A stretch of DNA of 64,000 bases from Mytilus edulis (taxonomy: Eukaryota). The stretch lies in the NCBI RefSeq assembly GCF_963676685.1, contig NC_092355.1, forward strand, positions 19,530,001 through 19,594,000, read 5' to 3'. Position 1 is the stretch's first letter, and every line of letters starts with the position of its first letter. The translations under genes were made by a program, and so were the position numbers. Positions 3,666 to 56,181 of this stretch are shown piece by piece. A model generated the notes under the pieces. The model saw only the letters and a program-made list of their open reading frames with translations. It made no database searches and had not been told where the DNA came from.

Positions 3666-4490
3666 ATGGCTCAGTCTCCTGTTAGATTATGTGAAATCTG
3701 TGAAAATTCTCTAGGAAGTAGATACTGTACCGACTGTGAGCAGTTTTTCTGTGAGTCATGTGAATTATCACATTTAAAATCTAAATCTTGCAGAAATCAT
3801 TTCTTTAAATATGCCGACATTTCAAATCCGGAAGTAAAAACGCCAATTTGTATACAACACGAAGAAAAGTTAACATTTTACTGTTATACCTGTATATCAC
3901 TGATTTGTAACATGTGTTTGCCAATCACTCATAAAAAGCACGATTTCTGTCTGATCGATGATGCTGCTTCAAAAACGCGACCACGCTTAGACTTTGAGGT
4001 CAAATCAGCTGAAGCCCGCGTCTCTAGAGTTAAACAGCAAATCATCTCTTCTCGACTGACCCTCAAAAACGTTGAAGACGAAATAGACAAGGTTAAAAGG
4101 GATATTGATGAAAGAGTGGCTGTTATCGTAAACGCTCTTGATGCCACGAAGGACACTTTCTTGAAATCAGTCGAAGAACACAGACTGGAAGAAATCAAGA
4201 AGATAAACCAAGAAATTATGAAGATAGAAAAGGAGACTGAAAATGGCGTAGAAGTTTTGGATAAAATGAAAAACTCGATAGATGGACAAAATAATATCAT
4301 TCTGATGGATGCCTTTAGTGAAATGACCAAAACTTTGCATTCACTTTCTCTAGTTAATATGGGTACTGTGTTACCAGATCGCGTCCAGTTTATTCCATGT
4401 TCAAAGAAACCCTACTTTCATAATCTGATTGGAAATTTGTTAATAAGAAATCCAAATGGTTCTTGTTATGAAGTACAAATCCCGGAATAA
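3666..4490 (+). CDS. RING-less TRIM-like protein, copy 1 (B-box1, B-box2, coiled coil; no C-terminal SH3-like domain)
   Basis: ATG at 3666 gives MAQSPV, the same start as the paralogs. B-box1 CEIC..YCTDCEQFFCESC..SHLKSKSCRNH; B-box2 CIQH..YCYTC..ICNMC..THKKH; then a heptad-rich helix. Single exon, 274 aa. Confidence 0.85.
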   Translation: MAQSPVRLCEICENSLGSRYCTDCEQFFCESCELSHLKSKSCRNHFFKYADISNPEVKTPICIQHEEKLTFYCYTCISLICNMCLPITHKKHDFCLIDDAASKTRPRLDFEVKSAEARVSRVKQQIISSRLTLKNVEDEIDKVKRDIDERVAVIVNALDATKDTFLKSVEEHRLEEIKKINQEIMKIEKETENGVEVLDKMKNSIDGQNNIILMDAFSEMTKTLHSLSLVNMGTVLPDRVQFIPCSKKPYFHNLIGNLLIRNPNGSCYEVQIPE

Positions 4491-7027
4491 TTTTATAGAT
4501 CAATCAGATTTCCCTGCTTTCAAATAAATCTACTACGGATAACGAATTAATGCCACACACTAATTATATAGGTACTATACAATTAAATATCTCTGTTCAT
4601 GTAGTTTAAATCAACGTTATTTTCACACGAAGGAAATACAAAATTTAAACGACCACCATTTTTGTTTTTGTACTGTGATGAATCCTAGTGTATAACCTCT
4701 TTAAAGACCCGTCTAAATTAAACTTTTCACTAGCTGTCATAATCGTCAAGTACTCACATAGCTGGGTACCGTTTCACAAAGCCTTCGATAGGCTACGAAT
4801 CGTCGTACATCCATTGTAGATAAATCCTTGGTTTTACAACCGTTTCACATTGCCGTAATCATTTAAGATGATCGTAAATAACATGAATAATACGTAAATC
4901 CCGGCATAACTTTCTACAGCTATACCAAGTCGTATCTCGATTGAAGTTTAGTGTTTCGGCGAATATGAGTTATCCTTTGTGTCTTTTGATTTTGTTTGGA
5001 TGTACAATTACACAACCACGTCAACTTTGTGTTTTTGTATTTGTATTTGTATCCATCTGATGACTTAATAATTTTTCAAAAGATTTTTATAGTTCTTTCT
5101 TATGTTATACTGTTACAACACTGTCCGAGGTTAGAGGTAAAGATAAACTGTAAACGGGAAAAATTTTCGCATATTAAAAAGTTTTATATGACCACAATTG
5201 TCAATTGACCCCTTAAGTAGTAATTGCCCTATAGAGACCATTTCTCACAATTTTTTCATCTAGTTTGCTTACTTTAGAAAAAAATCTCCTTTGAAACTGA
5301 TGAATTAATTTCAGTCAAACTTGGGCTGAATGAGCCTCAAAGTACATAGTATATTTTTTTACTTCCTTGTACGACAAGAAACATGGCCACTATGGCTAAA
5401 ATGGAACAAAGGGGTAAAATGCATACAGTTTCGTTTGAAGACAATATGAAAGATGCAAAGAACATTTAACTTGAATTTATAAGCCACTCATCAATAGATA
5501 TTGAAAAGCAATGATTATCATTGATGAAAATATGAATATTTTTAGAATATCACTTTGGTATATTAATTAATAATATTATGTTAAATGGATTAACATCTGT
5601 ATTTTCTTGACATGTATGTCATACAACACGATCTCTGGCCATTGTTTCTAGATTTTTTTGACAAAAGAAATAAAAGACAGTTTTGATTTTTATTTTATAT
5701 GGGTAGATGAACCCTAAGTTTGAATCTTTTAACAATAGTTTTAACTGAACCATACTTGTTCAAGTAATTTTTTTAATTTTTTTATTGTCATCAGATGAAT
5801 ATTTGGCGAACTCTTCTGTATTTGTGGGGAATTTATTAAGCCTTTAAACTATTTGATTCCAGCTTTATTGCTGAGTCTTTTATAGACTTTTTATTATGTT
5901 ATGGTTTTACTTAATGTACTATGTGTACTGAAAACTACCAGCAACCCTGGATGATGTGTCCAACAAGATGACGATAATCGAAGAATGGTAAAATATTTTT
6001 TCTTAGTTTCCGATAGTCATGCATTGAATTTTATGTAAGTTAAATGAACACAAAACAGTTCTATCTATAATAACAACAACAAAGTCAAAATGCATGTGAT
6101 ACACTAATCTCCTGGGTTCTGAGAGATATTAAGCATAACGTGAATAAAAGCATCTTGTTTAAAATTATAAGCGACAGTAATAATAAGAGAAAAGTGAACA
6201 AACTCTAAATACGTCTCTGATCCATTGGACAAATAAGAAAAATCTGGTTCATAAATATAAAGGACTCTTTAGTAAAACAAATTTTGAATTGATTTAGTTT
6301 TTTCGTCAAATTTTCATTGCTGTGGAGAAAAATATTATTTCAATTATTTTTTAAACCCAGTTTATAATTTCCCACTTTAAAATTTGTCAAATGAATGTGC
6401 GCTAAGACTAAATCTTTGCTTTTACTGGAAAAAACTACAAAAATTCTGTATTCCGTTTTAATGAATATTAACAAGCACTTCCAAACCATAGATTTTATTT
6501 ATTCAGCAGATGTAAATCACAACTTTTTGTAGTAGTCTAAATAGACAAAATATTCAAAAAGTTTGCAGAAAGAAAAAGTGTTCTACATGAGCTGATACTG
6601 ATACGTCACGAAGGTCTAATGGCTGCCTAAAATTTCACAATCATTCAATGATTATCATTTATCACGTTGATCACAGGACTTTTAAAGTGTTGAAATTACT
6701 TTCTAAAGCATCTTCTAACATTCTTCGAAGTTATTTGTTATTACTGGACACTCCTATATTGTATTCTACATTTGAGACGAGTTGCAATGATCAGTTGTGG
6801 ATGTTGTTTTTTTTTTAAAGGAAACTCGATTCGTGATTTACGATGGATTTACTGTTTGATAGACTTCAAAATGTCTAACGGTACGGTCAATTTTACTATC
6901 AATATTAACATTGTAACAAAACACAAACAAAACAATATTTATAGATCAAAACCAAGTTCATCACGTCATTTCAAAAAGCCTGCGAAAACAACGTTAACGT
7001 TTTCCTGAACTGTTCGGACATTTAATA

Positions 7028-8750
7028 ATGAAAGTATACATTGATGGAGCATGCAAGAATAACGGAAAGCCATTGGCAAAGGCCAGTTATGGTATATTTT
7101 GGGAACCAAATAACATCAAAAAAATAAATGATCCAGTTCCTGAATCTTACAAGCAAACAAACAATACGGGGGAACTGTATACTGCCGAAAAATGCCTTCA
7201 ACAAATACACGAAAATCAATTATCAAACATTATCATTAAAACCGACAGTGAATATTTAGTTAGAGGTATAACTAATGACAATGTTTATTGGAAAAGCATC
7301 AACTGGAAACTCAAATATTCCGGAAATGATATGAAAAATAAAGAGCTGTGGTCAGACATAGATCATTTGTTATCAAATATAAACGTATCGTGGGTGCACG
7401 TTGCTCGTGGTTTTGGAATCGGTGTGATTGAAGCCGATAAACTCGCAAAACTTGCGATGAACATAAAAACGTCTGGAAAAACCGTTCAAGCAAATAATCA
7501 GAGTATCGTGAATGTGTGCAACAACATTGAATGAAGCGACGACGAAGAGCAAACTATACCGAGGAAGGTAAAAACCCCGCGTCTAAGTATCTCTAACAAC
7601 AAACTCTCAAAAATAATACTTAGGCAAACTCTACGTCTTTCTGTACAATGTCAACACTCAGGAGAATTGAAAGTCTTTTATTGTCAACATCTGAGGAAGT
7701 TTTAAATTTAAATGATGCCCTTAACTGTCATATTGACTCGTCAAACAGTCAATTTCAAGAGATGAAAGACAAATTTGCATCATTAACAAATACGGTTAAA
7801 GTTCAAACCAATTCAGCTTTTACCTCCGTTCAAGAAGTTTTTACACAAACACAGCTCATTAAATCGGATATCGATAAAAAAAAACAAAAAGGCATTTATA
7901 AATAAATCCAACAGTTTGTGGGACAAATTAAATGCCGTTTCAAATGAGATTAAATCTGTAAATTTAAAATCATCTCACGTCAACGATTTAACAAAAACTG
8001 TGACAGAAACACCAAATCGCAAAAGAGAGGAAAGAATTTCATCTACAAATAAACCAACACCTGGAACATACAGCAACACTGTAAAAAGTGGATTACCAAG
8101 TAGCTCTAATAAGCCGGTTTCTATAAAAAGGACAAACCTATGTAACAACCATGATGCTCAGAGTTATCCAATAAATACAAAACACACAGACCGTAAAGTC
8201 AACTCTATTATCCGCATTTCCATCGGTCTTTTGACTAGAAAAGCTTATTTCTTATTGGGAGTTCAACTCTAAAAGAGATGTCTCCTAGGAAAATGTCAAC
8301 TCAACAAATCAATGCCAAAGTAAAGACTATCCGGGGAGGACGGATCAGAGTCATTAAAGATTACCTAATTCAATGCATATTAGAAGGCAGACTTGGTTGT
8401 GTTGATGTTATTGCTACTCATGTGGGCACTAACAATGTATGAGATGGAGACTCTGTTCATGCTATTATGGACGACTTCAAAAATTGATTTGTACAGTCAG
8501 GCAAAGCTTACCAAGAACTAAGCTGGTAATTTCCTCAATTCTACGAAGGCCAACCCATTATCAAGCTAATCTTACAATTTAGAATATAAACAATCATCTA
8601 TTCTCTTTAGAGAAACAACATGTGGAAATTTTGGACACTACTTTAGACTTTCTATATTGAGACCATCCCAATCTTACTTTATTTGCAGACCATGATCACA
8701 CAAATGTTGCTAGTGCCAAACTTTTATGCCACAACATTATCTCGTTTTAG
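7028..8750 (+). mobile_element. Decayed retroelement-type ORF: RNase H1 domain, coiled coil, SGNH/GDSL esterase (LINE ORF1-like)
   Basis: RNase H motifs VYIDGAC, TNNTGEL, KTDSEY, KNKELW, WVHV, EADKLAK (7028-7534); coiled-coil fragments 7648-8270. Manual translation of about 8240-8750 gives SGNH blocks LFLIGSS, IRGG, HVGTNN, KLVISSIL, DHDH, with several stops and frameshifts. Confidence 0.7.
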
Positions 8751-8829
8751 GACAAACATATGATAAACATATGTTTACAATCATATGTTTACATAATTTG
8801 TATTGTATATCTAGTCAAACTTTTTTTAT

Positions 8830-15415: not shown

Positions 15416-16555
15416 ATGGAAACTAAAGAAGAAAAGTTACAGAAAGAAGTAGATGAATTGAGTAAGAAATTATACCATATGCACAAAGAAAAAGGTGAAA
15501 ACTTACAATTAAAGCAACAATTAGAACATAATAACAAAATCATTGAACAATTACAAAAATCAACAAAAACTGTATATGTTGCAAAAGAGAGACCGTTTAC
15601 AAAATTATCCGGTAGATCCGAAAAAGACAAAGATCCGATTATAAGTGATTGGTTGGAAGATGCCCGAGAACATCTCGTTACAATACCAGACGAAAAAGCC
15701 AAAATTGACTTTCTTATACAAAATCTACTATCTCCAGCTAAAGATGAGATAAGACTTAGACCGTTATTAGAAAGAGATTCTGCTGATAAAATTTTGCTTT
15801 TGATTCATCGTATTTATGATGGTGATGATTCAGTTAGTCAATTACAACAGCTATTTTTTCAAAGAAATCAAAAAGAGAATGAAACTTTGCAAGACTATTC
15901 TTTGAATCTGATGAAAATTTTTGACCAAATAAATAAGCGAGATAACACAGTTTTGGGTGACAAAGATAAAGTTCTTAAAGATCGATTTATTGAAGGTATT
16001 AAAGAACCACACTTGAAACGAGAAGTCAAACGATTCAGTTATGAGCACAAAACAATGAAATTTCTTGAGTTTAGACAGGAAGTGTTACTTTGGGTAAATG
16101 AAAATACACAAAGTTGGAAAGTAAAACTACAAATGCAAGATGCCGAAGTTGTTAGCAATCAAGCAATAAAATCAGAACACACATCGAAAGACAACTCCGA
16201 GATATTAAAACTTCTCACAAAACAACAGGAAATGTTAGAAAAGCAACAACAGCAAATTGATAGGTTGTCTAACAGGTCTAATGTTAAAACATATAGTGAT
16301 TCAACAAACAATGATGTATATAATAGCCATAAACCAATTGTTTGTTATAATTGTGGTGGTAAGGGTCATAAACGTCCAGAATGTCCATCAGCTTTTCAAG
16401 TACAAAGAAGTGACGAAGATACACAGACAACACATACTCGAGAACAATTTAGAGGTAGAGGAAGAAGTTATCGTGGTAGATATAACCAAAGAGGTAACAA
16501 ATATCAAGGCCGAGGTGGTGTTGTTCCTAGTGAGTCAGAAGAGGTAAAAGAGTAG
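15416..16555 (+). CDS. gag: Gypsy Gag
   Basis: 379 aa: N-terminal coiled coil, capsid-like region (RNQKENETLQDY, KDRFIEGI), CCHC knuckle CYNCGGKGHKRPEC, RG-rich tail. Confidence 0.93.
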   Translation: METKEEKLQKEVDELSKKLYHMHKEKGENLQLKQQLEHNNKIIEQLQKSTKTVYVAKERPFTKLSGRSEKDKDPIISDWLEDAREHLVTIPDEKAKIDFLIQNLLSPAKDEIRLRPLLERDSADKILLLIHRIYDGDDSVSQLQQLFFQRNQKENETLQDYSLNLMKIFDQINKRDNTVLGDKDKVLKDRFIEGIKEPHLKREVKRFSYEHKTMKFLEFRQEVLLWVNENTQSWKVKLQMQDAEVVSNQAIKSEHTSKDNSEILKLLTKQQEMLEKQQQQIDRLSNRSNVKTYSDSTNNDVYNSHKPIVCYNCGGKGHKRPECPSAFQVQRSDEDTQTTHTREQFRGRGRSYRGRYNQRGNKYQGRGGVVPSESEEVKE

Positions 16556-19500
16556 CTTCTACTGCGGTGAGTCGATCAGTAGAAGATACTACAGTACAGG
16601 TAGACTCCAATTCATTTCAGAGTAACATTTTTAAAAACATTGCTAGTAAAAGTCCAGAGACAGAAATTGTTGTTGAAAATCAATCAGCTATAGCATTTAT
16701 AGATACTGGTTCCCAGGTTTCAACAGTTACCGAAACATATTTTAAAACATTATTACAAAAGAAACCAATACTACATGATATAACAAAATGGATGAAAGTC
16801 ACTGGAGCCAATGATTTACCGATCCCATATTTAGGTTATATTGAACTTAACATTTCAGTAGCGAAAACAATGATTCCGAATGTTGGTTTTCTTGTTGTGA
16901 AAGATACAGATAACATTAGTAAATTGCCATTTTTACTAGGAAGTAATTTTTTTATGAAGATGAAAGAAGCTTTAGAAGTTTATAATGAAACCGAAATAAA
17001 CGCTCTTATTGGGAAGCAATTGTCAGGTATTTTAACTGTATACAATAATTCTTTTGACTGTGAAATACTAGATTCTCCAAAAATATCTTTTGTTAAGATA
17101 GCAGGTAGTAGTCCAGTACATATACCGGGAAATTCAATGAAGACAGTAATGTGTACAACCAGACAAAAAGACAATAATGAAAAGTATTGGGCAGTTGTTC
17201 AGTCATTACAAGGTAACCAAGGCTCTTTACCAAGAAACATTATGGTAGTTGATAGTTATGCTGAGATAAGTCAAGGAACAGTACCGGTACGTATGATTAA
17301 TATAGGATTAGAAGATATATGGATTAATCAGAAAACAAGAGTTGGTACATTACATTCAGCTTCACTGATACACGAGGTGTCACAAGACAATATTGACATT
17401 GATATAGATCAGACTCAAATTAATGTTCAAATAAAGGAAATAGATATTGCTGTTTGTAAGCAAGCTACAACAAATACAGAGAATAAGAAAATACAATTGA
17501 ATGACCTCGACATAGAAAAGGAAAACCTTACCGATGAACAAATAGAAAAAGTTAAAGATTTGTTAAACAAGAACACCGATATATTTTGTAAGAACGATTT
17601 AGATTTAGGATATACAGACATTGTAAAGCATAGAATTCTTACAACAGACGAGAAACCAATTGCGATTCCACATAGACGCATTCCACCTAATCAAATGGAA
17701 GAAGTTAGAACACATATCAAACAATTGTTAAATCAAAACATTATTCGTAAGAGTAGTAGTCCTTATGCTGCGCCCGTAGTAATAGTACGCAAGCATGACA
17801 AGTCTATTAGACTGTGCGTAGATTACAGATTACTGAATAAAAAGACTATACGTGACGCATATCCACTTCCAAGAATCGAGGAGGCGTTAGACACCTTGCA
17901 CGGAACAAAGTTTTATACTACGCTAGACTTATCCCAAGGTTATTATCAGGTAGCGACCGATGAAAGAGATATACATAAGACTGCATTTCGTGTTGGCACG
18001 GGAGGTCTTTATGAGTACCTAAGAATGCCGATGGGACTTTCTAATAGTGCGGCTACATTTCAAAAGATAATGGAAGCATGTTTTAATGACAAAAATTTTG
18101 AAATATTATTGATTTATTTAGATGATATTCTTATCTTTTCAAAGACAGTAGAAGAACAGTTAGAACGCCTGGAGTTTGTGTTTCAACGACTAAGACAGCA
18201 TGGTTTGAAATTAAAATTGTCAAAATGTCATTTCTTCAAGAAGGAGGTAAGATACTTAGGACATGTTATTTCACAAGATGGCATCAAAACAAACCCAGAC
18301 AAAACAAAATCAATACAAGATTGGAAAGTACCTACCACCGAAAAAGAACTCCGTTCATTCCTAGGACTATGTAGTTACTATAGGAAGTTTGTTCCAAAGT
18401 TCAGTAAGATATCTGCTCCGTTACATTCACTCATTACAAAAACAAATGGAAAGAAGGGAAAATCAAAACAATTCAAATTACTAAGTGCAAAAGAATTTCT
18501 AGAAAAATGGGATTCGAAATGTTTAGAGTCGTTTGAAGAGCTAAAACAGAGGTTAGTAAGTTCACCAATTTTAGGCTTTCCTGATTTCAAAAAGCCGTTT
18601 CGTTTAGAAACCGATGCATGTATAGAAGGTTTAGGTGCTGTTCTATCGCAAGAACAAGAACAAGGAACTGTTGTAATAGCGTACGCATCACGCAGCTTAC
18701 ATCCGAATGAAAAGAACATGGAAAACTACAGTTCTATGAAACTTGAAATGTTGGCTCTAAAATGGGCTGTGACCGAAAAATTCAGAGACTATTTGATAGG
18801 AAGTAAATTTATAGTTTATACCGATAACAATCCTTTATGTTACCTGCAAACTGCAAAACTGGGTGCGACTGAAATGAGATGGGTTTCTCAACTTGCACAA
18901 TTTGACTATGAGGTCAAATACAGATCAGGACGATCTAATGTCAATGCAGATGTATTGAGCAGGAATGCATTAGATGTTGAGACAAATATCAGACAAATCG
19001 TACAAAGTTCTTCTTTAAGCAAATTGCGAGAGTGTAAAAACAACGATGTACAACACATACAGATAAATCAAATAAATTTGACTGATCAAATAGAGACAAT
19101 GTCAACATTTCCAGAGTATACTGTAAACGAAATAAAACAATTACAAAGAAGTGATAATGTTCTCTCTGTTGTTTTAAATTTTGTAGAGCAGGGTAAACTG
19201 ACAACACAGATGCTGACGAGACAAACGAAACCAGTGAAGAAGTTACTGAGGAAATTTGATGCATTGGTGATAGACAATGGTATTTTATATAGAAAGATAA
19301 ATGACATAGAATGTGGTGAGTGTAAACAGTTAGTTATACCAGAAACATTGAAACACTATGTTCTTGAAACACTACACAATCTATCAGGACACCAAGGTAC
19401 AGAACGAACATTGGCGCTATTACATAAACGATGTTACTGGTCAGATATGGTAAATGATGTTAAACACTGGATAAAAACATGTGAACGTTGTTTAGTTGCT

Positions 19501-20784
19501 AAAAATCCGTTACCAAAAGTTCGTCCATCAATGGGTTCCTTAATAGCATGTAAACCACTAGATATTTTAGCTATGGATTTTACAGTGTTAGAGAAATCTT
19601 CAGATGGTAGGGAAAACGTTTTAGTACTAACTGATGTGTTTACTAAATTCACACAAGCATTTCCGACGAGAGACCAGAAGGCAACAACTGTCGCTAAAGT
19701 ATTAGTTAAGGACTGGTTTTTGAAACTAGGGATACCAAAACGGTTACACAGTGATCAGGGTAGGAATTTCGAGGGTGTAGTGATACGTGAACTCTGTAGG
19801 ATATACGACATTAAGAAATCACGCACAACACCGTACAAACCAGAAGGAAACGCTCAAACTGAGAGATTCAATAGGACCATGCATGACAGATTAAGAACAT
19901 TAATGCCTGAAAAGAAAGCTAAATGGCCCGAGTATTTGCCAGAACTAACTTTTATGTACAATGCAACACCGCATTCTTCAACTGGATATACTCCATATTT
20001 TCTTATGTTTGGTCATGAGCCGAGACTCCCTATTGACAATCTTTTTCATAATGATATGACAGAAATAGACACCGATTTAGACACTTATTTAGCTAATCAT
20101 CAAAAGCGAATGACTGAAGCTTTGAAGACAGCTAATGAAAACATCCACAAGAAAGCGAGTGAAAGACAAGACATTATGAACAGAGGAACAGATGACAAGT
20201 CTATAGAAATTGGTTCCAACATCTTATTGAAGAAACATGTACAAGGACGAAACAAAATGCAGGACAATTGGCATCCAACACCGTACAGAGTTGTTCACCG
20301 TTTTAAAGACAATGTGTACGGAATTCAGTTAGCCGATGGTAGTGGTCCCGTTAGGAATGTAACAAGAAGAGAAATTTGTGACACAGGAAAAGTAGACATG
20401 ATGCAAAACTCAAGTTCAGATATTACTGAGGACAGTAATTCGAGTTTTGGAGGATGGAATGTGACCATTGTTGACCCGAATCCGTTACCAATTCAAATTG
20501 ACCATCAGGAATCTGGCGAAGATGAACAAGATGTAACTACAGCTAGCGTAGATGATGACAACTCAATAAGGAGATCAAAACGAACAAACGCTGGAAAACA
20601 TTCAAATCCTTTTAACTTGCCAAAGTCTGTCTTGTTAAAAGAAACATCTGTTCATGGAAACATAGAACCAGTGAAATTTGAACAATTGGGCGAAGCAATT
20701 GCTGCATTAGGAACTAGTCTTGGACAGAGTTTAGGACAAACACTTCAAGAAGGATGGTTAAAGCATAATATGTCAAACAATTAG
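16534..20784 (+). CDS. pol: Gypsy Pol (protease, RT, RNase H, integrase), in the -1 frame relative to gag
   Basis: The frame opens after TGA at 16531-16533 and overlaps the end of gag. Motifs: FIDTGS, RLCVDYR, YLDD, ETDAC, HNLSGH..CERC, MDF/HSDQG/QTER. Confidence 0.95.
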   Translation, partial: VRRGKRVASTAVSRSVEDTTVQVDSNSFQSNIFKNIASKSPETEIVVENQSAIAFIDTGSQVSTVTETYFKTLLQKKPILHDITKWMKVTGANDLPIPYLGYIELNISVAKTMIPNVGFLVVKDTDNISKLPFLLGSNFFMKMKEALEVYNETEINALIGKQLSGILTVYNNSFDCEILDSPKISFVKIAGSSPVHIPGNSMKTVMCTTRQKDNNEKYWAVVQSLQGNQGSLPRNIMVVDSYAEISQGTVPVRMINIGLEDIWINQKTRVGTLHSASLIHEVSQDNIDIDIDQTQINVQIKEIDIAVCKQATTNTENKKIQLNDLDIEKENLTDEQIEKVKDLLNKNTDIFCKNDLDLGYTDIVKHRILTTDEKPIAIPHRRIPPNQMEEVRTHIKQLLNQNIIRKSSSPYAAPVVIVRKHDKSIRLCVDYRLLNKKTIRDAYPLPRIEEALDTLHGTKFYTTLDLSQGYYQVATDERDIHKTAFRVGTGGLYEYLRMPMGLSNSAATFQKIMEACFNDKNFEILLIYLDDILIFSKTVEEQLERLEFVFQRLRQHGLKLKLSKCHFFKKEVRYLGHVISQDGIKTNPDKTKSIQDWKVPTTEKELRSFLGLCSYYRKFVPKFSKISAPLHSLITKTNGKKGKSKQFKLLSAKEFLEKWDSKCLESFEELKQRLVSSPILGFPDFKKPFRLETDACIEGLGAVLSQEQEQGTVVIAYASRSLHPNEKNMENYSSMKLEMLALKWAVTEKFRDYLIGSKFIVYTDNNPLCYLQTAKLGATEMRWVSQLAQFDYEVKYRSGRSNVNADVLSRNALDVETNIRQIVQSSSLSKLRECKNNDVQHIQINQINLTDQIETMSTFPEYTVNEIKQLQRSDNVLSVVLNFVEQGKLTTQMLTRQTKPVKKLLRKFDALVIDNGILYRKINDIECGECKQLVIPETLKHYVLETLHNLSGHQGTERTLALLHKRCYWSDMVNDVKHWIKTCERCLVAKNPLPKVRPSMGSLIACKPLDILAMDFTVLEKSSDGRENVLVLTDVFTKFTQAFPTRDQKATTVAKVLVKDWFLKLGIPKRLHSDQGRNFEGVVIRELCRIYDIKKSRTTPYKPEGNAQTERFNRTMHDRLRTLMPEKKAKWPEYLPELTFMYNATPHSSTGYTPYFLMFGHEPRLPIDNLFHNDMTEIDTDLDTYLANHQKRMTEALKTANENIHKKASERQDIMNRGTDDKSIEIGSNILLKKHVQGRNKMQDNWHPTPYRVVHRFKDNVYGIQLADGSGPVRNVTRREICDTGKVDMMQNSSSDITEDSNSSFGGWNVTIVDPNPLPIQIDHQESGEDEQDVTTASVDDDNSIRRSKRTNAGKHSNPFNLPKSVLLKETSVHGNIEPVKFEQLGEAIAALGTSLGQSLGQTLQEGWLKHNMSNN

Positions 20785-39220: not shown

Positions 39221-40198
39221 ATGGCGCAGTGTCCTGTTAGGTTATGTGAAATTTGTGAGAATTCTCCTGGAAGAAGATACTGTGTAGATTGTGAACAGTT
39301 TTACTGTAAGACATGTGAAATATCGCATGTAAAATCGAAATCTTGCAGGAATCATGTTTTTCAAGATGCCGACATTACCAATCCGGAAGTAAAAACACCC
39401 ATTTGTAAACAGCACGACGAAAAGTTTACATATTTCTGTAATACATGTACATCATTGATTTGTAACATATGTTTGCCTACAACACACAAGGCTCACGATT
39501 TCTGCTTGATAAATGAAGCTGCTTCAAATGAGCGATCACGGTTAGACAAAGAGGTGCATACAGCTGAAGAGAGCATCAGGAGTGCTAAACAGAATATAAT
39601 CACTTCTCGATTGACTTTCAAAAACTTTCAAGAAGTAGTAAAGAAGACTCAATCAGATATTGAGGATAGGGTTGTCGTCCTCGTAAATGCTGTCAATGAC
39701 ACAAAAGATGCGTACTTAAAGTCAATCGACAAACATGAAATAAAAGAATCACAGAAGTTGAAACAAGAAATTCTAGAGATCGAAAAGTCAACTGATTATA
39801 GCCAAGAAGTTCTTGATAAGATGAAAATATCCATAGCCGCGGAAAATGATATTATTCTACTGGATTCGTTTATTGACATGACAAAAACTATAAAGTCAGT
39901 TTCTCTCTCGAAAACGAAGACATCAATACCAGAAAGAATTCAGTTCGGTCTTGTTTCAACTAAACCCGAACCAGAAAATCTGATAGGAAATCTTAACTTT
40001 GGAAAATCAAGTACCACCTTTAAAGTATGTGATAGAGTTCGAGTGAGGCCCAGTGTAGTTAAACCGCAATATTCTTGGGGCATAATCACATATCAAAGTA
40101 TAGGTACAGTTGCAACCGTAGATGGGAATCTTTTAAAGATCAATTTTCCAGGAGCGATAGGTTGGCAAGGATTAGCTTCGGAGATGGAATTGGTATAA
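39221..40198 (+). CDS. RING-less TRIM-like protein, copy 2 (2 B-boxes, coiled coil, HERC2/KEG-like SH3 repeat)
   Basis: MAQCPV start homologous to the paralogs; C-terminus DRVRVRPSVVKPQYSWG..QSIG..INFP..WQGLASEMELV. 325 aa, single exon. Confidence 0.88.
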   Translation: MAQCPVRLCEICENSPGRRYCVDCEQFYCKTCEISHVKSKSCRNHVFQDADITNPEVKTPICKQHDEKFTYFCNTCTSLICNICLPTTHKAHDFCLINEAASNERSRLDKEVHTAEESIRSAKQNIITSRLTFKNFQEVVKKTQSDIEDRVVVLVNAVNDTKDAYLKSIDKHEIKESQKLKQEILEIEKSTDYSQEVLDKMKISIAAENDIILLDSFIDMTKTIKSVSLSKTKTSIPERIQFGLVSTKPEPENLIGNLNFGKSSTTFKVCDRVRVRPSVVKPQYSWGIITYQSIGTVATVDGNLLKINFPGAIGWQGLASEMELV

Positions 40199-41224
40199 TT
40201 AGTTCGATTTCCTTTCGGATCACAGTCGAAATATTAAACTGGTAAAATTCAATGGCGCAGAAGTCAACCCAAACATTGTATTTACTAAAAGGACTATTTG
40301 TTGTTAAGCAGAACTGATAGAAATAATCATAAAAATATGTGTATGTCATTTTAATTTATGTCGAATATATTTTAAAACTGCATGTGAAAGACTTCCAGTA
40401 TCATGATTATTATGATCCTAAGATTAAGTTCTGTTTGTCATTAGTGTTTTTTCAATTAGGTGGGGGGATTAAGCACAAATTTTAATTAGCAAAAAAAACA
40501 TGTGTATTGTTAATTTTAGATAAAGGTTAACGAAATTAAATGTTCTTTTACATTTCTGCTTTATGCTCGCACTGTTTACTATCGAATAAAGTTAAGAATG
40601 GAAATGGGGAATGTGTCAAAGAAACAACAACCCGACCAGAGAGCAAATAACAACCAAAGGCCATTAATTCATCGTGAAAATATCGCACCAAAGGCGAGCT
40701 TCAGCTGGCCCCTAAACAAAAATGTATACTAGTTCAGTGATAATGGACGTTGTACTAAACTCCGAAATATATAAAAGAAACTCAAATTAAAAGTCATACA
40801 AGACTAACAAAGACCAGAGACTCCTGACTTGGGACAGGCGCAAAAATGCGACGGGGTTAAACATGTTAAATGAAGACTTCACTTTTTTTTCTTCAGAAAA
40901 TCCATTACTATGGTTCTGTTGGTTAATCGAGTCGAGCTTTTAGGTTTTTCTAGTAAATGGAAGTCCGCTTTTGAATTTTTCATTTATCTTTGATTTTGGG
41001 ATTTTTGTTAATACTGTTGAATATATGTTTAACTTTTAAAAGGTTTTACAATTTATATTTTTTAAAAGTCCTCATCCACTTTTTTGTCCGAAGCGAAAAT
41101 GAAAAAAATAAAATATCATTTTAATTTATAGAATTAATTTTTCCAAAGACGCATATTCTATAAAATGAATCCTTAATGAGTTTTGTATTTTTTCTAACAC
41201 AGCTCATCTTTATTGCACTATATG

Positions 41225-43620: not shown

Positions 43621-44169
43621 TGCTGGCATGCTACGGGTTACGGTTTTCTCATATAGTTTATGAGTTTTGTTTTGACATTTGATTAGAGACTTTCCCTTTT
43701 GAATTTTCCTCGGAGTTTTTGCCAATTATTTTGATTTGCTCAATGTGACAGTTGTAGAGACCACGCAAATCTCCTAGTTTATTATTAAAAATTTCAATAA
43801 GAACTTGTATTTGGGTTTTCAAATATTTTTGCCTGCAGCATCACATAAGTTGCGCAAAATGCAAAATTGGTGCCGTTTTGTATCCCAAATTCATGTATTT
43901 GGTTTTGATGTTATATTTGTTATTCTCATCGGATTTTGTCTAATGCTTAGTCCGTTTCTGTGTGTGTTACATTTTAATGTTATGTCGTTGTTCTCCTTTC
44001 ATATTTAATGCGTTTCCCTCAGTTTTAGTTTGTTACCCCAATTTTGTTTTTCGTCCATAGATTTACGAGTTTTGAACAGCGGTATACTACTGTTGCCTTT
44101 ATTTAATGTGAATGTATTATGAATTTTGCATAAGTATCAAACTACCGGCTTCAAAAATCCTTTTGTGAG

Positions 44170-44935
44170 AAGATTGACTTTGAAGAAAAATTATACAAAG
44201 GCTTAAAATGATATTGTTGAAAGAGTGAATATAATCGTTATAGCCAATTCAAATGACATAAAAGTTGCTTACTAGTAATTGAAGTCAACTGCTGAAACCA
44301 GATTAAAAGAATCACAGAAGTTGAAATAAGAAATTTTGAATAGTGAAAAAGCATCTGAAAATTGGTAAAGAGTTCTGATTAAAGTGAAAAACTCCATAGC
44401 TGAAGAAAATGTCATGGTGTTTGGTTCATTTAGTGACACAACCACCAAGACTTTAAAGGCATAGCAAGGATTCAATTTTTCCTTGTTTTAACGAGACTGG
44501 GAGCAGAAAAACTGATTGGAAATATAAACATTAACACACCCAAATACCATTATTAAAGAAGCTGACATTGTTAGTTTAATAAAACCAATTACTAGTACTG
44601 CTATTTAAGTAGGTGATAGAGTTCTACAGAAGCCCAACATACAAGATTGGCAAAAGATACCAGAGGGACATTCAAACTCATAGATGAAATAGTAAACAAT
44701 AGTACACAAGACACAAAATAGAAAAACTTAAGACTAAGCAACACAAAACACTGGGGATGATCTCAGGTACTCCGGAAGGGTAAGCAGTTCCTGCTCCACA
44801 TGTGGCATCCGTCGTGTTACTCGTGTTATTACATACCTGGAAAGTAGTCTAATTCGGTAGGTCACATTCATGGAAAGGGGAAAACATCAAAACACATGGC
44901 TTAATCTCGCAGGAAAGTATCGTAAAGGTTTTACT
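44170..44935 (+). pseudogene. Relic of the B-box/SH3 family (coiled coil to SH3 part), interrupted by a repeat at about 44640-44880
   Basis: Nucleotide matches to copies 3 and 4: gatattgttgaaag, aaagaatcacagaagttgaaa, tcatttagtgaca, gcagaaaaactgattggaaat, ggtgatagagtt, ttaatctcgcaggaaagtatcg. Confidence 0.8.
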
Positions 44936-44970
44936 TATGATAAAAAAAAAACAATGTTCTTATAAAATTT

Positions 44971-45436
44971 CTATATATATATATATATATATAAGTACGT
45001 CTGAGTCAGTGACAACTCTACAACAGATGTATCCATCGGATCGCCATCAATGATGGGGATACATGGCTGTGTACATAATGTATATACAACTCGTCTAAAC
45101 ATCAACCCAACAATGTTAGATCTGTAAATTTGCTTTCGCAAATTTTTGGTTCTTCCCTCGCCGGGATTCGAACCCATGCTACTGTGATATCGTGACACCA
45201 AATCGCCTGCACTGCAGCCGTCCCGCTAGACCAAACGACCATCTGGGCTTCAAAAATAAAGCTTTCGTTGGCCGTGTGTTACCTTTCCTCGTCAGTTTTA
45301 ATCTAGCGGTGGACTACAGTACATGATATATAAGGCATGGAGATGTTATTGTTACAGATCAGCTCAACTATCTATAGTAAAGGATCCTACAAATTAATGT
45401 AAGATACAGTCACAGAAAATAATTATATTTATAAGA
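44971..45436 (-). mobile_element. tRNA-derived repeat abutting a (TA)n microsatellite; tRNA-like head at about 45155-45249
   Basis: Minus strand gcccagatggtcgtttggtctag (A box) and gcatgggttcgaatccc (B box), resembling tRNA-Leu/Ser. The acceptor stem does not close properly. Confidence 0.6.
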
Positions 45437-47127: not shown

Positions 47128-48149
47128 ATGGCACAGTATCCTGTTAGATCATGTGAAATCTGCGAGAATTCTCCGGGGAGTGAATACTGTATAGACTGTG
47201 AACAGTTTTTCTGCAAGTCATGTGAAATAGCACATTTAAAAACTAAACCATGCGGGAATCATGTCTTTTAAGATGCCAACGTTGCCAATCCGGAAGTAAA
47301 AACGCCCGTTTGTAAACAACACGGAGAAAAATTAGCGTATTACTGCAACACGTTTAAATCATTGACATGTATTATTTGTTTACCGACCGTACATAATCGA
47401 CACGATTTCTGTCTAATAGATGCTGCAGCTTCAAAGGCCAGGTCCCTTTTGGATAGAGATGTGTTAGCAGCAGAAGACAGTATCGAAAGGGCTAAGGAAA
47501 GAATAATTTCTTCGCAATTGGCTCTAATTAACTTAGAAGATAAAGCAGACCAGGCTAAACAAGATATTGTTGAAAGGGTGGCTGTCATCATTAATGCCCT
47601 CAATGATAAAAAAAAGATGATTACTTGAAGTCAATTGATGAACACAGATTCAAAGAATCACAGAAGTTGAAACAAGAAATTTGGGATAGTGAAACGGCAA
47701 CAGAAAATGGCCAAGAAGCTCTGTATAAAGTGAAAAACTTAATTACTGGAGAAAATAATGTCATGCTTTTGGAATCATTTAGTGACATAACAAAGACTTT
47801 AAGAACAGTTTCTTGTGTAAGTAGGATGAAAACGATCCCACCAGGAATTCAATTTCTTCCGGTTACGAAGCCCGAAGCAGAAACACTGATTGGATATCTT
47901 AACTTTACAAAACTAAATACCATTATCGAAGAAGTTGACCCGGTTAATTTGATAAAATCAACTACCGTTATTAAAGAAGGTGATAGAGTTCGTGTGAAGC
48001 CCAGTATAAAGAACCCCAAACTTGGATGGGGCGGTGTCTCGCATCAAAGTATAGGAATTGTTTTATCAATACAAGAATGCAACATAACTATAAAATTTTC
48101 CGAAATATCTACATGGGACGGTTATCTTTCAGAAGTTGATTTGGCATAA
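47128..48149 (+). pseudogene. B-box/CC/SH3 copy 3, disabled
   Basis: ATG at 47128; premature TAA at 47269-47271 (CAA in most paralogs); B-box2 Cys to Phe; +1 frameshift in the A run at about 47608-47615; SH3-like domain otherwise intact. Confidence 0.85.
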
Positions 48150-49272: not shown

Positions 49273-50291
49273 ATGGCACAATGCCCTGTTAAATCATGTG
49301 AAATATGTGAAAATTCTCTGGGAAGTAGACACTGTATAGACTGTGAACAGTTTTTCTGTAAGTCATGTGAAATAGCACATTTAAAAACTAAGCCATGCAG
49401 GAATCATATCTTTCAAGATGCAGACATTGCAAAACCGGATGTAAAAACTCCCATTTGTAAAAACACGGAGAAAAGTATACGTATTACTGTAACACGTGTA
49501 CATCATTGACTTGTAACATTTGTTTGCCGACCACACATAATAAACATGATTTCTGTCTAATAGATGCTGCAGCCTCAAAAGCCCGGTCAGTTTTGGATAA
49601 AGATGTGTTAGCTGCGGAAGACAGTATCGGAAGGGCTAAAGACAAAATCAATTATTAACGATTGGCTCTAGCTAACTTTGAAGATGAAGCAGAAAAGGTC
49701 AAAAAGGATATTGTTGAAAGGGTAGCTGTCGTCGTTAATGCCATTAATGATACAAAAGATGACTACTTGAAGTCAATTGAAGAACACAGATTCAAAGAAT
49801 CACAGAAGTTTAAACAAGAAATTATGGTTCGTGAAAAAGTAACGGAGAAAGACAGAGAAGCTTTAAATAAAGTGAAAAGCTCCATTGCTGGATAAAGTAA
49901 TGTCATGATATTGGTTTCATTTAGTGACATGACCAAGACTTTAAAGACAATTTCACGTGCAAGTCTGCAGACTACTATCCCACAAAGGATTCAATTTTAC
50001 CCTGTTTCAACGAAGCCCGAAGCAGAAAAACTGATTGGAAATATGATCATTACAAAACCAAATATCGTTAATATAGGAGCTGACATTGTTAGTTTTATAA
50101 AATCAGATACTACTATTAAAACAGGTGATAGAGTTTGATGATTGAAACCCAGTTTAAAAAATCCAACACATCGCTTAATCTCGCAAGAAAGTATCGGAAA
50201 GGTTTTATATATAATAAGGAACAAGGTACTTGTAAAATTTCCCGAAATTTCTTCATGGAGTGGATGTCTTTCAGAAGTTGAATTGGCATAA
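49273..50291 (+). pseudogene. B-box/CC/SH3 copy 4, disabled
   Basis: ATG at 49273; frameshift at about 49460; stops at 49893-49895 and 50136-50138; ends ...SEVELA TAA. Confidence 0.88.
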
Positions 50292-50635
50292 TGGGTCCGT
50301 TTTCTAGGTTAACATGGTTAAGGAGTATGAAATATATCGTAACTAAACAGTAAATAAATTTATACAATTTATGTATTGTAACCGTCGTTATAGGAGGCCA
50401 ATCGAGTTATATGGTATACACATGATTATTGTAAGACAACATGATATAGAACTGCACCTGTTACAAGACATCAGTGTGTTATATATAGATAAAGTCAATG
50501 AACTTTAAGCTCGTGGAACTGTTAAAATGTCAGTCAAGAAAAGATAGGCGGAGTCTCTATAAATGTAAACAGATTGATAAGATGATAAAGCAATATTATT
50601 ATATTTTATGTATCTCCCTCTTGAGACAAGCAACT

Positions 50636-51109
50636 GGTTACAAGAGCGCAATTATTCGTAATGCATTTTCCATAGGGTACCACTAGTGTTCCGTATTTTT
50701 TTTTCTCGAAGACTACACAAACTAGGGAAAAACGGGTGGCAGTTCCTTTTACTAGAAATGCCAGTGTTGCATTACAACTAACAAAAAATATAGGTTCATG
50801 CAGCTCAAATTGACTTAAAAAATTCAGTTGAAAAAGATCGTCTACTTTTTTCGCTGAATGAAAAAGGCATATTTTTAATGGCATCGACGTGCAGATATTG
50901 AAGATATTTTCTATACTTCGTAAAATGTGACTATGATTTTCGGCAATTTTTAAACCTAATTGGATAAGCTTTCGATTAAATGTAATTCCAATCCTGTATC
51001 AACCAATCAGAAGCCGTATAGCATTCTACTCTGAGTACCATCTTGGGGTAAAAAACGGGGTAAAAAACTTGACGGTAAAATGTAAACAAATAATTGCGCT
51101 CTTGTAACC
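50636..51109. mobile_element. MITE with 21-bp TIRs and 4-bp AACT TSD (Sola-like, tentative)
   Basis: ggttacaagagcgcaattatt ... aataattgcgctcttgtaacc, flanked by AACT on both sides. Confidence 0.8.
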
Positions 51110-51289
51110 AACTAGTTTAACACAGTTCATTAAGTCACATTAGATATAATTAACAAAGATAAATATTTACTTCTACAATTTAACGATTATACGAAATAAA
51201 TTTAGAAAATCACTTAAAGAAAACAGAGAAAATGTTTTCTCAAATGAGAGGTTAAATTAAATAAAGAAAATAGTTTCATACAAACATAA

Positions 51290-54200: not shown

Positions 54201-54480
54201 TTTTGCATTTATGACACTTTTTACTGTATGGGGAAGAGTTTCTTCTCTCATGTGTTTTTCCACATTTTCCACAACTAAAACTCGAGTTCGAGTCTCGCCT
54301 CTCATCATGCTCATGATCTCGTCTGCTCGGACCTTTCTTTGTGTTGCCTTCATTGTGGGTATTTCTTTAGTTTTGAGCTTTCCTACTTAATGTGTGTACG
54401 TTTTCATCTTCGTTTAACATTTTCATCTGTTTTCTCGATTCTTCGTCGGAACGACAAATACCAACAGCTTTGTCAAGTGT
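51290..54480 (-). mobile_element. Decayed Gypsy (Mag/K02A2.6-like) gag-pol remnant; integrase tail inverted
   Basis: Minus strand: CGKCGKTH..KKCHKCKKQNH knuckles, RKIPAALR, INYLSKFV..FIWTHEKQQAF, PVAYVSRSL, LIVDYYFRY. Plus strand about 51290-51800: YYDKSS, HSYVIETPEG, RNRKHL. Confidence 0.75.
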
Positions 54481-55164
54481 TTATCACCCATCGAGGGACG
54501 TTTCTGTAAATCCTGCTTCTACATCTCGAAAGCAGGGTCCATTGTCAATCATCACAATAGAAATTGTTTTAAATATAATGAATCCCTTTAACAATTATTA
54601 TAGTTTAAGTTATTAATCATACTCGTAACTTGTATATACATATTTTCTTCTTCTTCATTAGGTACACGATTGAATGCAGTTTTTCAAGGCTACCAGGATT
54701 ATTATTTAATACGCCAGACGCGCGATTTGTCTTCATAAGACTTATCAGTATTGCGCAGATCAAAATAAAGCGACTGCACTTTTAACTTCGATTAAAACAA
54801 TTCTGTCCGGTGAAACAAGCGTTTCAAAATTTTAATCCTGGTATCTATGATGTATTTATTATTTGTTTCATTTAACGATATCTATTCAATTTATATTGTT
54901 GGCATTCGTAATAATATTTTGTAAAATAAGTAAAATTCCACAAGAAATACATCAAATCAATATCGATAAATATGTCAAATATCAACATCAACATCAATGT
55001 ATTCTAAAAGTATTTACATCTCGACTAACAGACTCTGCCTTTGTTATTGAAACGAATAACGACCATGACATTAGCTGCAGAGATTTAGGTGTGTTTTAAC
55101 ATTATATAATATCCGCAAACGTACATGATAATTAACAACATATTACGTAGCAGATAATATTAAA

Positions 55165-56181
55165 ATGGCACAGTGTCCTGTTAACTCCTGTGAAATATGT
55201 GACAATTCTATTGGAAGAAGGTTTTGTATGGACTGTGAACAGCTTTTCTGTAAGTCATGTGAAATATCACATTTGAAAACTAAATCGTGCGTGAATCATG
55301 TATTTCAAGATGCTGATAAAGCCAACCCGGAAGTGAAAACACCTATTTGTAAACAACATGGAGAAAAGTATACTTATTACTGTAACACATGTTCATCATT
55401 GACTTGTAATATATGTTTGCCAACTACACATAATAAACACGATTTCTGTCTGATTGATGCTGCTGCTTCAAAAACGAGGTCAGTTTTGGATACAGAAGTG
55501 AAAGTAGCTGAAGACAGAATCAGGAGAGCTAAAGAGAAAGTAACCTCGTTTCGATTGAATCTCAAAAACTTTGAAGATGAAGTAGACAATACTAAAACAG
55601 ATATTGCGGAAAGGGTGGCTGTCATCACAAAAGCCCTTAACGACACAAAAGATTCTTACTTCAAGTCTATTGACGAGCACAAATCGAAAGAATCTAGTAA
55701 AATGAAAGATGAAATTAATAAGATTGAAAACACAATTGCTATTGAAAATGACATACAGTCACTGAATCAAATGAAAAGCTTGATTGATGGGCAAAATGAT
55801 ATTATACTTTTGGATTTATTCAGTGACTTTACAAAAACTTTGAAAGAATTAAGTCTCCTTGATATCTTTGATAAGGAATCAACAGCAAAAGCTAAGTTTT
55901 TTCCAGCTGCAGCGAAATCTGGGACAATAGAAAAACTTATTGGAAGTATTAAATTGGTAGAATTTAGTGGCGCCGAAGTTAAACCAAACATAAAAGTGGG
56001 TGATCGAGTTCGTGTGAAATCTAGTGTTAAGAAACCGACCTTAGGATGGGGACCTGGTGTCTCTCATAAAAGTATCGGCACGGTCGTTGACATACCATCT
56101 AATACCAGTGGACTGATACACATTAAATTCCCAAGTTACTCTTGCTGGGAAGGCTATATCAATGAAATGGAATTAGTATAA
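55165..56181 (+). CDS. RING-less TRIM-like protein, copy 5 (2 B-boxes, coiled coil, HERC2/KEG-like SH3 repeat)
   Basis: Intact 338-aa single exon; C-terminus IKVGDRVRVKSSVKKPTLGWG..HKSIG..IKFP..WEGYINEMELV. Confidence 0.9.
   Translation: MAQCPVNSCEICDNSIGRRFCMDCEQLFCKSCEISHLKTKSCVNHVFQDADKANPEVKTPICKQHGEKYTYYCNTCSSLTCNICLPTTHNKHDFCLIDAAASKTRSVLDTEVKVAEDRIRRAKEKVTSFRLNLKNFEDEVDNTKTDIAERVAVITKALNDTKDSYFKSIDEHKSKESSKMKDEINKIENTIAIENDIQSLNQMKSLIDGQNDIILLDLFSDFTKTLKELSLLDIFDKESTAKAKFFPAAAKSGTIEKLIGSIKLVEFSGAEVKPNIKVGDRVRVKSSVKKPTLGWGPGVSHKSIGTVVDIPSNTSGLIHIKFPSYSCWEGYINEMELV

Follow-up and report, generated by a model that had tools for sequence, protein, structure and literature searches.

A cluster of TRIM-like genes lacking a RING, in several of which a single β-barrel of the HERC2 INBD type is fused behind two B-boxes and a coiled coil, was found in the mussel Mytilus edulis; its existence is confirmed, and it is conserved among mussel species. 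The reading we favour, with a probability of about 0.6, is that of a Mytilus-specific cluster evolving by birth and death, the barrel-bearing products of which would act as dimeric, non-catalytic adaptors.

Organisation and state of the gene cluster

Six copies, all on the + strand, were recovered by tblastn of three intact ORFs against the window (the whole 64-kb stretch of DNA analysed, ∼32% G+C). Their pairwise identities were 43–78%, and E-values as low as 1e-110 put the similarity well outside what chance would give; all six lay where the initial annotation had placed same-strand copies. The copies and their parts are:

3666..4490, + strand: c1, intact 274-aa ORF with B-box1, B-box2 and coiled coil (type A)
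39221..40198, + strand: c2, intact 325-aa ORF with B-box1, B-box2, coiled coil, linker and INBD-type barrel
40010-40195, + strand: INBD-type barrel of c2, located with an HMM of the C-terminal domain
40233..40277, + strand: fossil second linker of c6 type, 15 codons, immediately after the stop codon of c2
44153..45060, + strand: c3 relic, coiled-coil remnants with many stops, B-boxes missing
47128..48149, + strand: c4 pseudogene, stop at codon 48 and frameshift near codon 162
49273..50291, + strand: c5 pseudogene, frameshift near codon 63 and several stops
55165..56181, + strand: c6, intact 338-aa ORF
55189..55452, + strand: c6 B-box1 (residues 9–45) and B-box2 (residues 59–96)
55456..55869, + strand: c6 coiled coil (about residues 98–235), modelled as an antiparallel homodimer
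55984..56178, + strand: c6 C-terminal β-barrel (residues 274–338), HERC2-INBD type, SH3_15 family

Two further, broken c1-type copies, 4–8 kb upstream of the window, were detected in a genome search and bring the cluster to at least eight. Three of the eight are intact (c1, c2 and c6), each being a single open frame that specifies B-box1, B-box2 and a coiled coil; the other five are pseudogenes with stops or frameshifts, and retroelements have inserted between the copies. The description of these genes as intronless holds for the coding frame, to which its scope is confined. All five complete copies begin with MAQ(C/S/Y)PV, in agreement with the MAQxPV start first noticed, in the context A(–3)/G(+4). 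Comparison of the flanks revealed no promoter or UTR block conserved between copies; only a 24-nt stretch was shared, by c1 and c4.

Copy c1 ends in a short tail with no barrel domain; a c1-type orthologue from M. californianus (P0008) has a longer acidic tail. Every other copy in the window carries the domain, intact or decayed, as had been proposed: it was detected by HMM in c2, c4, c5 and c6, while c3 (tblastn match at 44153–44529, E = 4e-12) retains decayed remnants at ∼44609–44647 and ∼44950–45060, split by ∼300 bp of unrelated sequence. The idea that c3 is a relic without the C-terminal domain was rejected on the strength of these remnants. In c4, one Zn-ligand Cys has changed to Phe, and the barrel (47964–48146) is still an open frame; the barrel of c5 (50145–50288) is without its P-x-x-x-W-G loop, a deletion also present in an intact ORF of M. 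coruscus (P0004). The fossil linker behind c2 shares 12 of its 15 residues with the c6 linker of the window, and 14 with the linker of P0246, the c6 orthologue from M. coruscus.

Orthologues of c6 are present in four other Mytilus species, all of them 338 aa long and 92–98% identical. The barrel is their best-conserved region: 59 of its 65 columns are invariant, compared with 80% in the rest of the protein, a difference that is marginal in this five-species comparison (Fisher p = 0.048).

Identity of the C-terminal barrel

The HMM of the C-terminal domain (∼62 aa) matched c2, c4 and c6 with E-values of 1e-33 to 1e-35 and c5 with 4e-14, and gave no other match in the window. At the sequence level, the barrel matched residues 88–163 of the human HERC2 chain of PDB entry 9l8y (E = 1.3e-10), as well as entry 9l93. 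The model of c6 showed five strands over residues 273–338 (pLDDT 70–91) in an SH3-like barrel fold, and the top two Foldseek matches were again 9l8y (rmsd 1.1 Å, 48% identity) and 9l93, the pair spanning 1.0–1.1 Å and 47–48% identity; the REP of MIB1 (4tse) came at rank 27 (21% identity, rmsd 2.6 Å), the other matches being Tudor, KOW and CPH barrels. Within the mussel genome, the barrel is confined to this cluster and a single HERC2 exon; the first half of the mussel HERC2 barrel exon is 56–65% identical to it. The HERC2 exons matched sit directly before the exon for the ZZ finger. The proposed likeness to the HERC2 repeat just before that finger is thus borne out, as is that to the repeats of plant KEG: the Lactuca protein P0040, which clusters with KEG of Lactuca sativa, was matched over 11 repeats (E = 3.9e-41).

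When scored against Pfam SH3_15 (PF18346), the barrels of c6 (22.3 bits), c4 (18.9) and c2 (15.1) fell under the 24-bit cut-off, while the Mytilus proteins P0002 (27.8), P0003 (25.9) and P0094 (36.7) exceeded it, as did the HERC2 INBD fragments (25.6–30.9). The suggested SH3_15 membership therefore applies at the level of the family, some Mytilus members being above the cut-off. Assignment to the MIB/HERC2 domain (PF06701) was rejected, there being no such Pfam match and the match being to the INBD, which is SH3_15. These results confirm the barrel as HERC2-INBD type, SH3_15 at family level, and it belongs, as the initial annotation had it, to none of the standard TRIM C-terminal classes. The cluster ORFs lack the CPH-INBD-ZZ context of HERC2, no CPH domain or ZZ finger being found in them by Pfam.

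A phylogeny of the domain, as the initial annotation had advised, placed the Mytilus barrels in one clade (support 0.994), nested in a larger clade (0.947) that also takes in the HERC2 INBD and the repeats of the fish finTRIMs; the branching order of the mussel clade relative to those of fish and HERC2 had supports of 0.586 and 0.0. In this tree HERC2 was represented by short fragments, 68–85% identical to the mussel HERC2 exons and including one cluster with a member named HERC2, because multi-repeat proteins outrank full-length HERC2 among the best 150 of the representative search. Since the two barrel exons of mussel HERC2 were compared separately, no joined mussel HERC2 barrel entered the tree.

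In mussel HERC2 the barrel is split by an intron, whereas in the cluster it is uninterrupted, which suggests that the latter originated as a retrocopy. The tree gives no placement of mussel HERC2 as the barrel donor, and the retrocopy origin thus stays a suggestion.

B-boxes, coiled coil and predicted dimer

Pfam searches of c1, c2 and c6 detected two B-boxes per copy (zf-B_box, 45–50 bits over two stretches against a cut-off of 24.1, with ANCHR-like_BBOX covering B-box1) and no RING; the N-terminal RING finger of the TRIM family is thus missing from all three. Pfam TRIM_CC remained below its threshold of 30 bits in the window copies (16–17 bits; c6, 17.3). The AF2 model of c6 contained one long helix over residues 93–231, and the homodimer model gave an ipSAE of 0.53, against 0.00 for the best control, with antiparallel contacts, at least 90% of which agreed among three runs, and a partner pLDDT of at least 76. 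Among 30 proteins solved as one-chain pairs, 21 attained the mark set for homodimer models; among 23 solved as single chains, none did. The c6-type protein is accordingly predicted by modelling to dimerise through an antiparallel coiled coil.

A pass of this kind may reflect the exposure of the model to solved TRIM coiled coils.

Distribution of the family

Among 1861 candidates in the mussel genome, at least 119 were scored matches of the RING-less B-box/coiled-coil kind. The paralogues sampled were single ORFs of 255–326 aa with two B-boxes, no RING and the same kind of start. With well over a hundred such ORFs, RING loss is therefore genome-wide rather than specific to the cluster. In every search made, only Mytilus proved to have a single INBD-type barrel fused to B-boxes and a coiled coil. 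The notion of a lineage-specific class consequently stands for the combination with the barrel but not for RING-lessness, which is the rule in a very large B-box/coiled-coil family of this genome. The union of TRIM and SH3_15 is not new as such, since finTRIMs of otocephalan fish have a RING, B-boxes, a coiled coil and 1–6 repeats, and zebrafish ftr97 with SH3_15 repeats has already been shown (PMC11701565). As judged from sequence, the trait specific to the cluster is the single-barrel fusion, its component parts being already known.

Proposed function and alternative explanations

RING-less B-box1/B-box2/coiled-coil single-frame genes have undergone a very large expansion in the mussel. The cluster would represent one of its branches, in which a single SH3_15 barrel, with the HERC2 INBD and the fish ftr97-like finTRIM repeats as its nearest relatives, became fused behind the coiled coil. 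By forming an antiparallel dimer, as in canonical TRIMs, the protein would present two barrels as ligand-recognition modules. Without a RING, it might serve as a non-catalytic scaffold or adaptor that sequesters a protein ligand, or that delivers it to assemblies built via the B-boxes and coiled coil. Ligand binding, the adaptor role and any immune function we infer.

A rather unlikely alternative, drawn by analogy with TRIM16, is that these proteins are RING-less E3 ligases in which the B-boxes supply the activity, or which recruit it by heterodimerising with RING-TRIMs. The Cys/His zinc ligands of the B-boxes, invariant or nearly so (≥90%) across 20 family members, would be consistent with this, and RING-less TRIM16 itself is reported to have E3 activity and to homo- and heterodimerise, the latter with other TRIMs, through its coiled coil (PMC3357404).

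A bolder proposal, to which we give only a slim chance, is that the HERC2 INBD is a portable module caught independently by TRIM-type scaffolds in mussels and in otocephalan fish, and that the mussel E3 is split across genes, dimeric RING-less scaffolds choosing the target and separate RING-only TRIM-type proteins performing catalysis. If true, hundreds of single-ORF genes would make up a combinatorial recognition system.

It is improbable that the captured domain competes with HERC2 as a mimic, binding its partner (NCOA4-like, iron-sulfur-loaded) and shielding it from HERC2-mediated degradation. The barrel is an INBD homologue, the INBD of human HERC2 is the principal site of contact with [2Fe-2S]-bound NCOA4 (PMC12318192), and the W-G pair that contacts the backbone is conserved in the mussel barrels. 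However, while HERC2 fragments keep the contact residues K2655, Y2656, K2657, K2677, Q2686 and T2690 or exchange them conservatively (mean entropy 0.82 bits), the mussel paralogues have other residues there, which vary from one paralogue to the next (2.0 bits in these columns against 0.93 for the other columns; n = 8 sequences only), and the CPH domain, which cooperates with the INBD, is absent from the mussel ORFs. Under the adaptor reading, each paralogue probably has a ligand of its own; the NCOA4-contact positions differ between paralogues and are fixed within the c6 orthologues.

That the copies are ordinary RING-TRIM E3 ligases with the RING on an unrecognised upstream exon is very hard to accept. 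The frame is open for 81 (c2) and 48 (c5) codons before the ATG, but in-frame stops lie 4–12 codons before it in c1, c4 and c6, and neither a C3HC4-type pattern nor similarity to the RINGs of fish TRIMs was seen in six-frame, stop-to-stop ORFs of at least 25 aa in the window or the 10 kb upstream. Public gene models of five Mytilus species, RefSeq XP records included, begin at the same Met, and so do the sampled genome paralogues. The RING-less nature of the copies, claimed from the outset together with a check for an upstream RING exon, has thus withstood examination of the window and the 10 kb upstream. Equally far-fetched is the view that a transient expansion has left only decaying remains, its intact frames being recent, functionless survivors: broken frames in five of eight copies and intervening retroelements would fit it, but the 338-codon frame of c6 is open in five species with its barrel best conserved, and c1, c2 and c6, only 54–60% identical to each other, are all open despite the low G+C content.

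The present evidence reveals no new mechanism. What c6 offers is a concrete, conserved example from an enormous and almost unstudied mussel expansion, with a recognisable domain of putative ligand-binding type that could be used as bait. In addition, the misleading public names 'HERC2 [Mytilus edulis]', 'Trim36-like' and 'transcription intermediary factor 1-beta-like' can be corrected.

Comparison with known systems

Plant KEG and the REP of MIB1/MIB2, the founding SH3_15 members, have the Pfam family and fold in common with the mussel barrel. KEG, however, combines a RING, a kinase, ankyrin repeats and many barrels, of which the mussel copies have the repeat itself only, and MIB proteins consist of MZM, REP, ankyrin repeats and RINGs. 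The human RING-less TRIM16 and TRIM29 resemble the mussel proteins in having B-box(es) and a coiled coil without a RING, but they are single multi-exon genes rather than a large expansion of uninterrupted ORFs, and their C-terminal ends are not SH3_15 barrels. That of TRIM16 is a SPRY/B30.2 domain.

The HERC2 INBD is the same five-stranded β-barrel of ∼62 aa, about 48–50% identical to that of the mussel (rmsd 1.0–1.1 Å), the two having in common the motifs G-D-R-V-R-V, W-G, S-I-G, F-P, W-x-G and E-M-E-L-V. In HERC2, it lies between the CPH domain and the ZZ finger of a HECT ligase of ∼4800 aa, whereas in the cluster it forms the C-terminus of a B-box/coiled-coil protein of 325–338 aa and does not retain the side chains that contact NCOA4.

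The ftr97/ftr79-like finTRIMs of Otocephala (annotated as 'TRIM65-like' or 'KEG-like') share with the mussel proteins a B-box/coiled-coil scaffold followed by SH3_15 barrels of the HERC2-like subgroup, which are 50–56% identical to the mussel barrel. They differ in bearing a RING and 1–6 tandem barrels in 500–715 aa, whereas the mussel copies have no RING and a single barrel that falls in a clade of its own and so are not ftr97-like proteins; the N-terminal halves are only 22–26% identical, and the fish barrels form a separate clade. The TRIM-barrel fusions of mussels and fish are probably independent. The recently defined HERC2 INBD is therefore not private to HERC2, but a mobile SH3_15 member found on TRIM-type scaffolds in two distant animal groups.

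Organisation of the gene cluster

The window (C12:19530001-19594000 of the 1.37-Gb Mytilus assembly) has the base composition of AT-rich animal DNA, with 30-35% G+C. A tblastn search using the three intact ORFs as queries recovered six plus-strand paralogues in it, at the positions given in the initial annotation, and a search of the whole genome added two c1-type pseudogenes lying 4-8 kb before the window start.

Copies of the TRIM-like gene (window coordinates unless otherwise stated)
c1, 3666-4487, + strand: intact, 274 aa
c2, 39221-40195, + strand: intact, 325 aa
c3, 44153-44529, + strand: relic, B-boxes absent, many stops
c4, 47128-48146, + strand: stop at codon 48, one B-box2 zinc ligand lost, frameshift near codon 162
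c5, 49273-50288, + strand: frameshift near codon 63, several stops
c6, 55165-56178, + strand: intact, 338 aa
L002 (stretch just upstream of the window):1958-2530 (C12:19521958): c1-type copy with stops, outside the window
L002:5534-6400 (C12:19525534): c1-type copy with stops, outside the window

With the two upstream pseudogenes, the cluster therefore comprises at least eight copies, three of them intact. The acidic tail retained by one of the upstream copies resembles the tail of P0008, a model from M. californianus. The C-terminal SH3-like barrel, said to be present, intact or decayed, in every copy but c1, was indeed matched by a domain HMM in c2, c4, c5 and c6, the only matches in the window, and weak remnants of it, interrupted by ∼300 bp of unrelated sequence, lie downstream of c3. 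The copies thus fall into type A, with a short or acidic tail (c1 and the two upstream copies), and type B, with the barrel (c2-c6). A Ty3/gypsy-like element and a LINE take up much of the gap between c1 and c2.

Mobile elements and other ORFs among the copies
7028-7534, + strand: stand-alone RNase H ORF, 168 aa (PF00075, E 7.5e-23), without an adjacent RT in the same ORF
15416-20784, + strand: apparently intact Ty3/gypsy-type LTR retroelement, in which a gag-like ORF, PNMA-like and with a zinc knuckle, precedes a pol of 1405 aa (protease, RT, RNase H, integrase)
31558-35358, − strand: LINE with a 1266-aa ORF2 (endonuclease/exonuclease/phosphatase domain, RT, zf-RVT)

The C-terminal barrel is of the HERC2 type

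Pfam recognised two B-boxes in each intact copy; its coiled-coil match stayed under threshold. The proposed membership of SH3_15 is confirmed at family level: fragments of the HERC2 barrel exceed the 24-bit cut-off, as do three further members of the Mytilus family, and the window copies themselves score below it (c6 22.3, c4 18.9 and c2 15.1 bits). The decisive evidence for the identity of the barrel is a sequence match: when solved structures were searched by sequence, c6 residues 261-338 aligned with the HERC2 chain 9l8y at its residues 88-163 (E 1.3e-10). This chain corresponds to HERC2(2540-2700), made up of the CPH domain and the INBD, a five-stranded barrel through which HERC2 mainly contacts [2Fe-2S]-loaded NCOA4 (PMC12318192). 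An AlphaFold2 model of c6 showed a single long helix at residues 93-231 and a barrel with pLDDT 70-91; when used in Foldseek, its top ranks were 9l8y and 9l93 (rmsd 1.0-1.1 Å, 47-48% identity). In contrast, the REP domain of MIB1, the founder of SH3_15, ranked no higher than 27th (21% identity). The suggested similarity to plant KEG also held, as P0040, a Lactuca KEG-cluster protein, was matched across 11 repeats (E 3.9e-41).

Outside the cluster, the genome search found just one relative of the barrel, in an exon; the next exon supplies the rest of the barrel, and the one after it encodes a ZZ finger. The locus is the mussel HERC2 gene, in which the barrel immediately precedes the ZZ finger, as the initial annotation stated for HERC2.

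Mussel HERC2 exons
L001 (HERC2 locus, C8 near 25.87 Mb):5018-5122, 4415-4522 and 3826-4050, − strand: split INBD barrel, with the ZZ finger next

The two HERC2 barrel exons were compared individually, not as a joined sequence. In HERC2 an intron interrupts the barrel after the S-I-G-T-V-T motif, whereas the cluster copies have none; this fits, but does not prove, capture of the barrel from processed RNA.

Where the fusion occurs and how it may have arisen

Searches of 5.8 billion proteins, with single sequences and with profiles, detected the family that combines B-boxes, a coiled coil and the barrel in Mytilus species alone, and among the best 150 of 374 barrel matches in a representative set of 1.84 billion proteins, the mussel-type N-terminus was present in one cluster, from Mytilus. 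TRIMs that have a RING, B-boxes, a coiled coil and 1-6 barrels do occur in otocephalan fish (cyprinids, characins, catfish and an anchovy), under the database names finTRIM 97/79, TRIM65-like and KEG-like; zebrafish ftr97 is shown in PMC11701565. Their N-terminal halves, however, are just 22-26% identical to those of the mussel proteins. A tree built from 272 barrel instances united those of Mytilus in one clade (SH-like support 0.994), nested in a larger clade (0.947) together with the repeats of the fish proteins and the barrels of HERC2, within which the branching order of Mytilus, fish and HERC2 was not resolved. Given the low identity of the N-terminal halves and a distribution that covers a single genus of mussels and a single superorder of fish, the simplest reading of these sequences is that the barrel was fused twice independently, in mussels and in fish.

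Immediately 3′ of the c2 stop codon lies a fossil c6-type linker of 15 codons (40233-40277, + strand), 14 of whose 15 residues are the same as in the M. coruscus c6 orthologue. It hints either that copies recombined or that an ancestor had two linker-barrel units. Two such units are present in the M. coruscus model P0005, and together with the fossil linker this makes an ancestor with two barrels plausible. A second, more distant Mytilus lineage, represented by P0190 (M. galloprovincialis XP_076116444.1) and P0191 (M. californianus), has B-boxes, a coiled coil and a degenerate INBD-like tail, and is 41-42% identical to c6. No orthologue of this lineage was found in the present assembly, where the best match is c6 (42%); presence/absence variation, a difference between species or a gap in the assembly may explain this.

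A putative dimeric scaffold

A two-copy model of c6 residues 57-262 yielded an ipSAE of 0.53 versus 0.00 for the best control. Such a pass can stem from the model's memory of solved TRIM coiled coils, and it denotes likeness rather than binding. Of proteins solved as one-chain pairs, 21 of 30 reached the mark used; of those solved as single chains, none of 23 did. Three runs shared at least 90% of the contacts, which were antiparallel and symmetric around about residue 155, with partner pLDDT of at least 76. In our preferred reading, with a probability of about 0.6, the RING-less protein would dimerise as a TRIM-like, non-catalytic scaffold, and the dimer would display two INBD-type barrels recognising protein ligands. 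Given the birth-and-death pattern of the cluster, an immune role would be possible. Alternatively, the protein might have an E3 activity that is RING-independent or supplied by a partner, as has been reported for TRIM16 (PMC3357404); we consider this unlikely here.

The c6 orthologues of M. edulis, M. galloprovincialis, M. trossulus and M. coruscus are all 338 aa long and 92-98% identical. The barrel is their most conserved region (59/65 invariant columns, 91%; marginal against the rest, Fisher p = 0.048), followed by the B-boxes (85%), the coiled coil (81%) and the linker (66%). Among paralogues, the six columns aligned to the NCOA4-contacting side chains of HERC2 (K2655, Y2656, K2657, K2677, Q2686 and T2690) had a mean entropy of 2.0 bits, versus 0.93 bits elsewhere; among HERC2 fragments, the contact columns averaged 0.82 bits. 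Since sites are fixed within an orthologue and differ between paralogues, these small samples suggest that each paralogue may have its own stable ligand, rather than being engaged in an ongoing arms race. The contact residues also speak against competition with HERC2 for its ligand, which is quite improbable, and the conservation of c6 speaks against decay without function, which is very improbable.

Absence of a RING and relation to known proteins

The absence of a RING, claimed at the outset, was upheld: stop-to-stop ORFs of at least 25 aa, in any frame of the window and the 10 kb upstream, contained neither a C3HC4-type pattern nor any likeness to fish TRIM RINGs, so that a RING on a hidden exon is very improbable. 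The ATG is preceded by in-frame stops at a distance of 4 (c4), 11 (c1) and 12 (c6) codons, an A(-3)/G(+4) context is common to the five starts, and the same start Met is used in public models from M. coruscus, M. edulis, M. galloprovincialis, M. californianus and M. trossulus, RefSeq XP records included. In c2 and c6 the coding frame is uninterrupted, barrel included; 'intronless' here means a single coding exon in these two copies.

Across the genome, the c6 protein gave at least 119 scored matches among 1861 first-look candidates, nearly all beginning at residue 1, in open frames of 255-300 aa that form large tandem arrays over several chromosomes.

RING-less B-box1/B-box2/coiled-coil arrays
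C8, 73.6-76.9 and 85.6-89.8 Mb
C11, 44.4-44.6 and 77.9-79.0 Mb
C12, 35.9-36.7 and 41.1-41.6 Mb

All eight array members sampled were single ORFs; four started with MAQAA, and two more had this motif a few residues in. Pfam, run on five, detected B-boxes in every one and a RING in none. Most stop shortly after a conserved IG-x-L-x-F(R) motif, and a few have other tails (e.g. NHL-like repeats or a Cys-rich tail). RING-lessness is therefore a trait of a huge mussel family rather than of this cluster, whose specific feature is the barrel. An expansion of bivalve B-box genes has been described at the orthogroup level (PMC8382680). Public databases already contain proteins of the present family, where their names say little or mislead.

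The initial observation and its domain assignment (HERC2/KEG/SH3_15) thus hold, and the interpretation drawn from them is supported in part. The novelty is modest, namely a RING-less, single-barrel form restricted to one mussel genus; RING-less TRIM-like proteins are a known kind, as is the combination of TRIM and SH3_15 found in fish ftr97.
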